From assembly GCF_964204865.1 (NCBI RefSeq), contig NC_135257.1:10664001-10728000 (forward strand): a stretch of 64,000 nt of DNA, in the 5' to 3' direction. Numbering within the stretch: the stretch's first letter is position 1; each line of letters opens with the position of its first letter. Below the pieces are notes generated by a model. The model saw only the letters and a list, made by a program, of their open reading frames with translations, was not told the origin of the DNA and did not search any database. Both the position numbers and the translations under genes were made by a program. The DNA is from Styela clava (lineage: Eukaryota). This document shows positions 24,091-25,969 of this stretch, one piece after another.

Positions 24091-25969
24091 GTTTCATATT
24101 TGTTATATTACCTATGCACAATCTACAATACAATATATACAGTAATTATAAGGGCACACATAAAAGCATTGGGTTATAAAAGCAAAAGTCAGTTCACATA
24201 CATGATTTAGTACCTAAGATCACCATATATTCTAAAACAGAAAACTTCTCTATTCATGGGAACATCAACCCTCTTAATTCAATACCTAGCTAGAAAACTT
24301 GATAGCCTCGGTTGGATTATACAAATTATCATATCAGTGTAGAGAAGATTGGCAGCAAGTGCTTTTTTAACATGAGGGGAGTAAAATAACAGAAGGACAG
24401 ACTGAAAAAACTCAATCCCGTGGCTATTTCACATACGATATATAAAATAAAACAGAGCTAACTCAAACCTTCTTTTTTGTTATCTCTAAAAAGCATATCA
24501 ATATGCAAGCACTAAGACCAACAATAACGACAAATTACCTATGACCTAACAAAAACAAATCAAGCACAATTCCTTATAAAAAAAAAACAATAAAATTCAC
24601 ATAATTATCATTTATATCTGTTGGGTAACATGATCAACAAATAAAATCATCCAATATATACAAAAAGGCAGTGGAATGTCTACACTATACAGTTCAAAAT
24701 TGGTCAGATCAAAAATGGTCGCAATATGAACATTCACACACTAGAAAGTAGTTGAACAATGCTGGATATTTATACAATGCTTGATAAAATGTACCTTTAT
24801 TTTATGGAAGAGTTAAAGATAGTATAATTAGATATTAAAATTAAATCGAACATCATAATATATTCCTCAGTTTTCAAAACACAGCAAGATCAAAATTATC
24901 ACATCGATTTTCCTTATAATTCCGGTTTATGAAAATATTTGACTTTCGAGTATAGTTATGTTAACAAAAAGTGGTCAGTAGTACTGGTTTTGTAAATCAC
25001 AAAAAAATGATCAAATCAAAATTTCATATATACAGAGTGTTCATAAAGTCTGTTTTCTATATATCTTAACCAGGTAAAGCAAAGTTTATTTTCTTCTATT
25101 TTTATATGGCTGCACAGAGGCCAACAAACTATCGATAAGTTCTCTATACAATTTGAAAAATTACTTAAGACTTAACGAACACCCTGTATTTGTACATTTC
25201 AGTTTATTATACTCAGTTTATTATACTGTATAAGTAAATATGTACATACACAATTCAAAAGTGTCACATTCTTTTCTACAACTACAACACAAAAATTGTA
25301 CCATGTCAGCACCAAATTTGATAATATGAAAAAGTAAGCCATAATATGAATATTGTAACAATGCTATACAATATTAGGAAAAAAAAATAAACTACAGCTA
25401 AAAAATGTACACAATGTTTCTGGTGTTATAACTTTACAATGGTTAGTTCCAAACAATGTTTTGAGAAAAAAATGATAACTTGCAAATTTATTGGAAATAT
25501 ATATGTACTTCATTTATTGATAACATTTGGTCATTTGATCACTTTATTAAAGAAATTGCAAATTTAAACCAATTAAAAAAAAAGAATTTGTAGTTGGGAA
25601 AACATATCTTACATTAAAATTACATGTGTTGTATTTGCTGTAATGTCTATGGTTCGGTTAAAATTGGTGATAATTATGATTGCAACAAAATCAAGTCCAA
25701 CTAATTAAGCCCAGGTATATTTATAGTTAGAAATAAAAGCACCATCAATCATTTTTAAACGAATTTGTGCAAAAAGCATTAAATACATCATGTTTTGCGC
25801 TAACGGTAAAAAAGTTGTCTAAGGCACCAAATACACATTCAATTCACAATTCTAAAACATTTGATAAAGCTTGATAAGCTAGACATAAAAATTGTTAATA
25901 ACTGATAAAAATTTACAGAAATTTTGTGACATCAAATTCAGCTATCTCATGGGTTTATCATCATCTTCT

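Follow-up and report, generated by a model that had tools for sequence, protein, structure and literature searches.

Alpha-catenin and COPS2 of Styela clava as a probable spliced-leader-resolved operon without intercistronic DNA

Our results suggest that alpha-catenin and COPS2, neighbouring genes on the minus strand of a 64,000-nt stretch of the Styela clava genome (hereafter the window, whose position 1 is its first letter), most likely form a dicistronic operon of the Ciona type that is resolved by spliced-leader (SL) trans-splicing. There is no intercistronic DNA between the two genes, because the last templated letters of the alpha-catenin mRNA are the very AG that serves as the trans-splice acceptor of COPS2. 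Both mRNAs begin with the same leader of 24 nt. The pair shows every architectural feature of Ciona operons, including a first gene with a single exon.

Sequence data and scope

The RNA evidence consists of Logan contigs from four sequencing runs (X1, X2, X3 and X6, from three studies), which were aligned to positions 22850-28849 of the window. These are assembled contigs rather than raw reads, and their label 'RNA?' is a guess. The four runs were used out of nine matching runs of one organism, in which 0.51-0.66 of the sampled words were present. In three of the four runs (X1, X3 and X6) contigs skipped intron 1 of COPS2, and in all four the bins at 23050-23649 within this intron had a depth at or near zero while the exons were covered. 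Since the intron is skipped and its bins are empty, X1, X2, X3 and X6 behave as RNA. Counts of junctions refer to the loose ends and contig pieces listed for these four runs, beyond which there were 15 more loose ends and 140 more pieces.

COPS2 was identified exon by exon in Pfam and PDB searches, using individual exons rather than a joined protein. Copies of the leader were searched for in the genome assembly G000, one of whose contigs is referred to below as C8. Searches against Rfam returned no family in the window and none in three loci of the SL gene array on C8.

The COPS2 gene and its acceptor

The COPS2 features are as follows.

24123..24124, minus strand: SL trans-splice acceptor AG of COPS2, and last templated letters of the alpha-catenin mRNA (X3 record 17)
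24112..24113, minus strand: AG favoured by the preliminary description, present but not the acceptor seen (inside the genome-matching part of X3 record 17)
24028..24122, minus strand: COPS2 exon 1 (5'UTR 24122-24091, ATG 24090-24088, 21 codons)
23022..24027, minus strand: COPS2 intron 1 (1006 nt, GT..AG; joint 23020/1 to 24027/8 in X1, X3 and X6)
22906..23021, minus strand: COPS2 exon 2 (22906-23020/2 covered in X3 record 17 and in X2 record 9)
17566..18000, minus strand: COPS2 exon further downstream, encoding the PCI domain (Pfam PCI, E=1.6e-09; PDB match to COP9 signalosome subunit 2, E=4e-27)

COPS2 occupies the minus strand between 24122 and about 17.6 kb, and a loose contig end before 22906 runs into the next COPS2 exon. 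The 5' end of its mRNA is given by a contig of 1895 nt (X3 record 17), which matches 24027-24124 with 0 mismatches and then continues into 22 letters that are absent from the window. The preliminary description, which was made from the window's letters and their open reading frames, had placed the COPS2 start codon at 24090, in agreement with our analysis (24090-24088). It had also proposed that the first nucleotide of the mRNA body, at 24111, might be joined to a non-genomic spliced leader, with the AG at 24113-24112 as acceptor. A non-genomic leader is indeed joined to COPS2, but at 24122: the proposed AG exists, 21 nt before the ATG and behind tattgtattgtagattgtgcat, but the acceptor seen is the AG at 24124-24123, 11 nt further upstream. 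Because the latter is the acceptor in use, the genomic part of the COPS2 5'UTR measures 32 nt (24122-24091), not 21 nt. The COPS2 mRNA is composed of the leader, 24122-24028, 23021-22906 and further exons. The AG at 24113-24112 may act as a minor alternative acceptor.

The 5'UTR of COPS2 contains an upstream ATG (24097-24083, minus strand; ATGAAACATGTCTGA), which opens a frame of 4 codons, overlaps the main ATG in another reading frame and is retained with either AG. Intron 1 contains a G+C-richer dispersed repeat at 23650-24020, which is covered by contigs whose ends continue into unrelated sequence. All four runs show a 92-nt skip from 23703 to 23796 within this repeat, and both the skip and the loose ends lie within 23683-23893. 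The coverage of the repeat probably stems from transcribed copies elsewhere in the genome.

The alpha-catenin gene and its mRNA

The features of the upstream gene are as follows.

30100..30950, minus strand: CpG-rich core upstream of alpha-catenin, candidate promoter of the unit (47 CpG in 851 nt, o/e 1.43)
28728..28729, minus strand: SL trans-splice acceptor AG of alpha-catenin (gtgtacAG/atac; exon start 28727; X3 record 22)
24122..28727, minus strand: alpha-catenin mRNA body, a single exon (one ORF and the colinear X3 record 22)
28727-28676, minus strand: alpha-catenin 5'UTR (52 nt)
28675-25970, minus strand: alpha-catenin CDS (2706 nt; 901 aa plus stop; one ORF)
25969-24122/3, minus strand: alpha-catenin 3'UTR, the 'spacer' (about 1.85 kb; contigs of X1, X2, X3 and X6)
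24122..24123, minus strand: alpha-catenin poly(A) addition site (after G24123 or A24122; X2 record 10)

The ORF of 901 aa, with its stop codon at 25972-25970 on the minus strand, belongs to the Vinculin family of Pfam (1056 bits). Its match in PDB is Catenin alpha-1 (E=0, 1149.6 bits), and vinculin itself scored far lower (about 155 bits). A contig of 4197 nt (X3 record 22) is colinear with 24555-28729 and gapless, and covers the whole alpha-catenin coding exon and 1.4 kb of the spacer. Past 28729 it carries 22 loose letters, which are identical to those on the COPS2 contig. The alpha-catenin mRNA is composed of the leader, 28727-24122/3 and a poly(A) tail, in one unspliced exon. The alpha-catenin contigs of X2 and X6 end in sequencing adapter at 28692 and 28716, respectively, and contain no upstream exon.

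The region of about 1 kb before the alpha-catenin start (28669-29641) is tandemly duplicated at 31078-31866, some 2.2-2.4 kb upstream, with 76-93% identity. The duplicated segment takes in the SL acceptor as well as the first bases, as far as ATGAGTT, and the upstream copy of the gene start runs into a stop (ATGAGTTAG). The CpG-rich core at 30100-30950 is part of this tandem duplication.

The spliced leader and its genes

The 22 non-genomic letters are attached at 24124 in the COPS2 contig and at 28729 in the alpha-catenin contig of X3. Since the match of both contigs to the genome extends up to and including the A of the acceptor, the leader ends in ...AAG and is 24 nt long. The 22-mer has no match in the window when up to 3 mismatches are allowed. 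The same short sequence is present on two unrelated mRNAs, at AG acceptors and from a non-local source, which is the pattern of a bona fide SL. Apart from one 5' G, the 24-mer equals the 'Chordata 1' consensus leader (PMC3795323, Table 1), which is reported as common to seven chordate species (PMC3795323). It is longer than the 16-nt leader of Ciona (PMC7986045).

The assembly contains 345 exact copies of the 22-mer. In 109 of them the next letters are GT and then A, T or C; 100 such places were listed, and all but one (99) map to a single strand of C8, from 4,230,889 to 4,600,717. This array comprises about 107 same-strand SL RNA genes, many of them at a spacing of exactly 1634 bp. The 19 array copies that we examined share a common upstream sequence with few single-base differences; in these, TATATAA begins 32 nt before the first nucleotide of the leader, and a GT donor follows directly after AAG. 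One copy, whose leader pairs with the donor region, folds at -48.5 kcal/mol (z -4.57). Its single-stranded linker holds a U-rich stretch, AAUUCUYGG or AUUUUUUGG, which by eye is a candidate Sm-like site. The array accordingly consists of repeated small genes with the leader as 5' exon, a GT donor and a putative Sm-type site, as SL RNA genes do.

Within the array the leader is identical, but at least three sequence types are found behind AAG/GT. Elsewhere in the assembly, a set of close-spaced leader copies (L013) was considered as an SL RNA gene array and rejected, because these copies form a decayed intronic cluster and lack the conserved promoter.

The spacer and the 3' end of alpha-catenin

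The 1.85 kb between the alpha-catenin stop and COPS2 had been described as CpG-poor, 3'UTR-like DNA with several AATAAA motifs and no promoter-like island, and our results bear this out. The spacer has 28% G+C and 15 CpG in 1847 nt (o/e 0.41, versus 1.43 in the core at 30100-30950), and CpG enrichment was found nowhere in 24123-25969. Seven AATAAA motifs are present, at 24801-24796, at 25090-25085 and at five positions further upstream. In all four runs contigs tile 24122-25969, and the spacer is therefore the 3'UTR of alpha-catenin. In X3, records 22, 21, 20 and 19 follow each other down to 24152 with successive overlaps of 30 nt, as neighbouring unitigs do.

The preliminary description had also called for the alpha-catenin 3' end to be mapped, and a contig of X2 provides it. 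This contig (record 10, 321 nt) runs from 24419 to 24122 and then shows 23 T on the plus strand, corresponding to A23 in the RNA. This A-run is untemplated, because the genome reads attgtgcat at this place. AATAAA and ATTAAA are lacking near the poly(A) site, the nearest being 679 nt upstream. The distance between the poly(A) site and the acceptor AG of COPS2 is 0-1 nt.

At 24152/24154 the contigs of both X3 and X6 are interrupted, X3 continuing into unrelated letters, and X2 has a G>A change at 24153. The probable cause of this interruption, which lies 30 nt before the poly(A) site, is a polymorphism or a graph break. As a consequence, the last 30 nt of the alpha-catenin 3'UTR are documented in X2 only.

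Evidence for a dicistronic operon

The operational definition of a Ciona operon is a same-strand gene pair with less than 100 bp from the 3' end of the first gene to the acceptor of the second (PMC2760879); alpha-catenin and COPS2 lie on the same strand and are 0-1 nt apart by this measure. The downstream mRNA carries the SL at that acceptor (X3 record 17), and the polyadenylated upstream mRNA ends at the acceptor AG with no AAUAAA within 40 nt (X2 record 10). Among the loose ends listed, the SL junctions were found in one of the four runs (X3), and one of the four, X2, showed the poly(A) junction, with one contig for each.

According to the reading that we favour, RNA polymerase II would start upstream of 28729, probably within the CpG-rich core (about 30.1-30.95 kb), and transcription would pass through alpha-catenin into COPS2, yielding a polycistronic precursor. 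The leader would be trans-spliced between 24123 and 24122, which would provide COPS2 with its cap, and the 3' end of alpha-catenin would be formed at the same phosphodiester bond. Transcription from upstream of alpha-catenin into COPS2 would mean that COPS2 needs no promoter of its own, and would explain its missing promoter by transcription borrowed from alpha-catenin. The preliminary description had named a dicistronic precursor, resolved by trans-splicing, as one of two possibilities. The SL on COPS2 and the alpha-catenin poly(A) tail at the same AG agree with that proposal, although the acceptor had been placed 11 nt off, and co-transcription of the two genes is what we infer.

Other observations bear on this reading. 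No contig bridging 24122 was found among those listed for the four runs; precursors would not be expected in contigs assembled from RNA of the poly(A) type. The depth ratio of COPS2 to alpha-catenin was about 0.05 in X1, 0.06 in X2, 0.8 in X3 and 0.23 in X6, which indicates no tight co-regulation, with the proviso that Logan contig depths are unsuited to ranking genes. If the core at 30.1-30.95 kb is the promoter, the alpha-catenin outron would measure at least 1.4 kb; the mean in Ciona is 438 bp (PMC4691747).

A further possibility, which we put forward tentatively and consider rather less likely than not to hold, is that the trans-splicing cut itself, and not the usual cleavage and polyadenylation machinery, produces the alpha-catenin 3' end. 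The second splicing step would then free an upstream RNA with ...AG-3'OH at 24123, and this RNA would be debranched and subsequently polyadenylated without AAUAAA. If so, one primary transcript would yield two mRNAs, one for an adherens-junction protein and one for a signalosome subunit. The locus could offer a convenient place outside Ciona for work on upstream 3'-end formation, with its high expression, long 3'UTR and clean AG-A(n) end.

The arrangement also matters for annotation. Gene models at this locus should contain neither an 'intergenic' gap of 1.85 kb nor a fusion of alpha-catenin with COPS2.

Alternative explanations

The main alternative to a dicistronic operon is that alpha-catenin and COPS2 are transcribed independently, as two units that overlap. 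In that case COPS2 would have a CpG-poor promoter inside the alpha-catenin 3'UTR or gene, and the leader would replace an outron that overlaps alpha-catenin. Several observations speak for this explanation. In Ciona, about half or more of the genes are reported to be SL trans-spliced outside operons, and outrons peak near 100 bp and are mostly shorter than 500 bp (PMC4691747, PMC7986045). The ratio of COPS2 to alpha-catenin depth varied about 15-fold among runs, and the contigs listed include no precursor over 24122. Nevertheless, we consider independent units unlikely. A poly(A) site within 1 nt of the acceptor, inside a 3'UTR of 1848 nt, would be hard to obtain by chance, and this coincidence is the hallmark that was argued to reflect polycistronic transcription in Ciona (PMC1488885). 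The absence of CpG enrichment from 24123-25969 also speaks against a separate promoter there. Furthermore, forming the 3' end of alpha-catenin already needs transcription over the boundary.

It is very improbable that the leader and the A-run are assembly artefacts, that is, chimeric ends of de Bruijn contigs. Each junction is carried by a single contig, some loose ends nearby are clearly chimeric (e.g. X3 at 24152 and 24584), and the leader, with its 345 copies, is at the same time a repeat dispersed in the genome. Against this, two independent contigs end at AG acceptors with identical 22 letters, these letters are those of a published SL, the A-run begins at the same AG (24124-24123), and SL and poly(A) ends of this kind fit the documented architecture of Ciona operons.

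The other model of the preliminary description, in which a shared, promoter-proximal leader exon at 30.1-30.5 kb would be joined by cis-splicing to the alpha-catenin exon at 28727 or, past alpha-catenin, to COPS2, had good acceptors at both exon starts and a GT donor after AAG near 30123 in its favour, but is the least credible of all and is contradicted for the mRNA forms assembled, since both X3 mRNAs start with a leader that is missing from the window (up to 3 mismatches) and is encoded by the SL RNA genes on C8, so that both contig 5' ends are a non-local SL and not alternative first exons, and the X2 and X6 alpha-catenin contigs stop in adapter with no exon upstream.

Comparison with other operons

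The layout found here closely resembles that described for Ciona. Cistrons of Ciona operons are directly juxtaposed, with junctions of the form '...AG AAAAAAAA' and '...AGAAAAAAAA' in which the AG is the acceptor, and 16 of 18 operons had no AATAAA within 40 nt (PMC1488885). Satou et al. (2006; PMC1488885) argued that this juxtaposition implies transcription over the boundary. They left open whether one transcript gives rise to both mRNAs or to only one of them, and they raised trans-splicing as the maker of the upstream 3' end without deciding the matter. In the genome-wide account of Ciona operons, same-strand pairs less than 100 bp apart amounted to 1,310 operons with about a fifth of the genes, and single-exon genes were enriched among the 5'-most genes (PMC2760879). 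Genes of Ciona operons are not tightly coordinated in expression (PMC1488885).

As in the operons of Ciona intestinalis/robusta, alpha-catenin and COPS2 are a same-strand pair with an SL on the downstream gene and poly(A) at the acceptor AG ('...AG AAAA'). The lack of AAUAAA near the site and the single exon of the 5'-most gene are likewise shared, as is the use of one SL for operon and non-operon genes. Differences from Ciona operons are the leader (24 nt instead of 16 nt), the other ascidian host and the long upstream 3'UTR of 1.85 kb. Moreover, the upstream gene alpha-catenin is itself trans-spliced, which is infrequent in Ciona (PMC7986045).

A close parallel for COPS2 is Rpl21, the second gene of the Ciona operon KHOP.805, for which the only cluster of transcription start sites lies at the operon's 5' end, ~1.7 kb upstream (Yokomori et al., 2016; PMC4691747). 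Both are second genes without a visible promoter of their own and with an acceptor at the gene's 5' end. The start sites of Rpl21 were mapped by TSS-seq (PMC4691747), whereas the COPS2 5' end is placed here by sequence and contigs.

SL1-type operons of C. elegans similarly show little intercistronic sequence, or none, and use the general SL (PMC1488885). However, the three characterised nematode cases of the SL1 type keep an upstream AAUAAA (PMC1488885), whereas alpha-catenin has none within 679 nt. The SL2-type operons of C. elegans and the operons of Oikopleura dioica are likewise polycistronic and SL-resolved, but their intercistronic regions measure about 100 nt and 23-30 nt, respectively (PMC1488885), as compared to 0-1 nt here. 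C. elegans also has a dedicated leader, SL2, for downstream genes, whereas one SL serves both genes here. As its cistrons are 0-1 nt apart and share a leader, the pair does not belong to the SL2 type.

Among the papers listed on operons of non-Ciona ascidians, judged by their listing entries and the openings of abstracts, we found no operon layout without intercistronic sequence. A gene pair reported from Botryllus has a spacer of 227 bp and no SL (PMC3691228). The alpha-catenin-COPS2 pair is most likely one more tunicate operon of the known Ciona layout, in an ascidian with a 24-nt leader. The zero-spacer arrangement, first known from Ciona, is thereby extended to an ascidian with this longer leader, which bears on the age of the layout among sea squirts.

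Leader copies inside LTR retrotransposons

Part of the leader copies in the assembly lie in retrotransposons. The 24-nt leader is found within both LTRs of Ty3/gypsy-type elements (L003/L004, L005/L006, L007/L008, L009/L010, L011/L012, L053 and L054), which encode a gag zf-CCHC, a protease and an RT-RNaseH-integrase. In a first family, the LTRs are 717-754 nt long and 99-100% identical, and the leader begins ~570 nt into the LTR, at about the place expected of a U3/R border. In a second family the LTR has 238 nt and the leader begins 89 nt in. A literature search for an SL inside tunicate LTR elements, judged by titles and the openings of abstracts, returned nothing relevant. Copies of the first family differ behind the leader, which is followed in some by GTGTATAATT and in others by TTCTTACAG-GTGTATAATT, a pattern that the use of two alternative acceptors would produce. 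The sequence of these elements suggests that their RNA may have been trans-spliced before reverse transcription.
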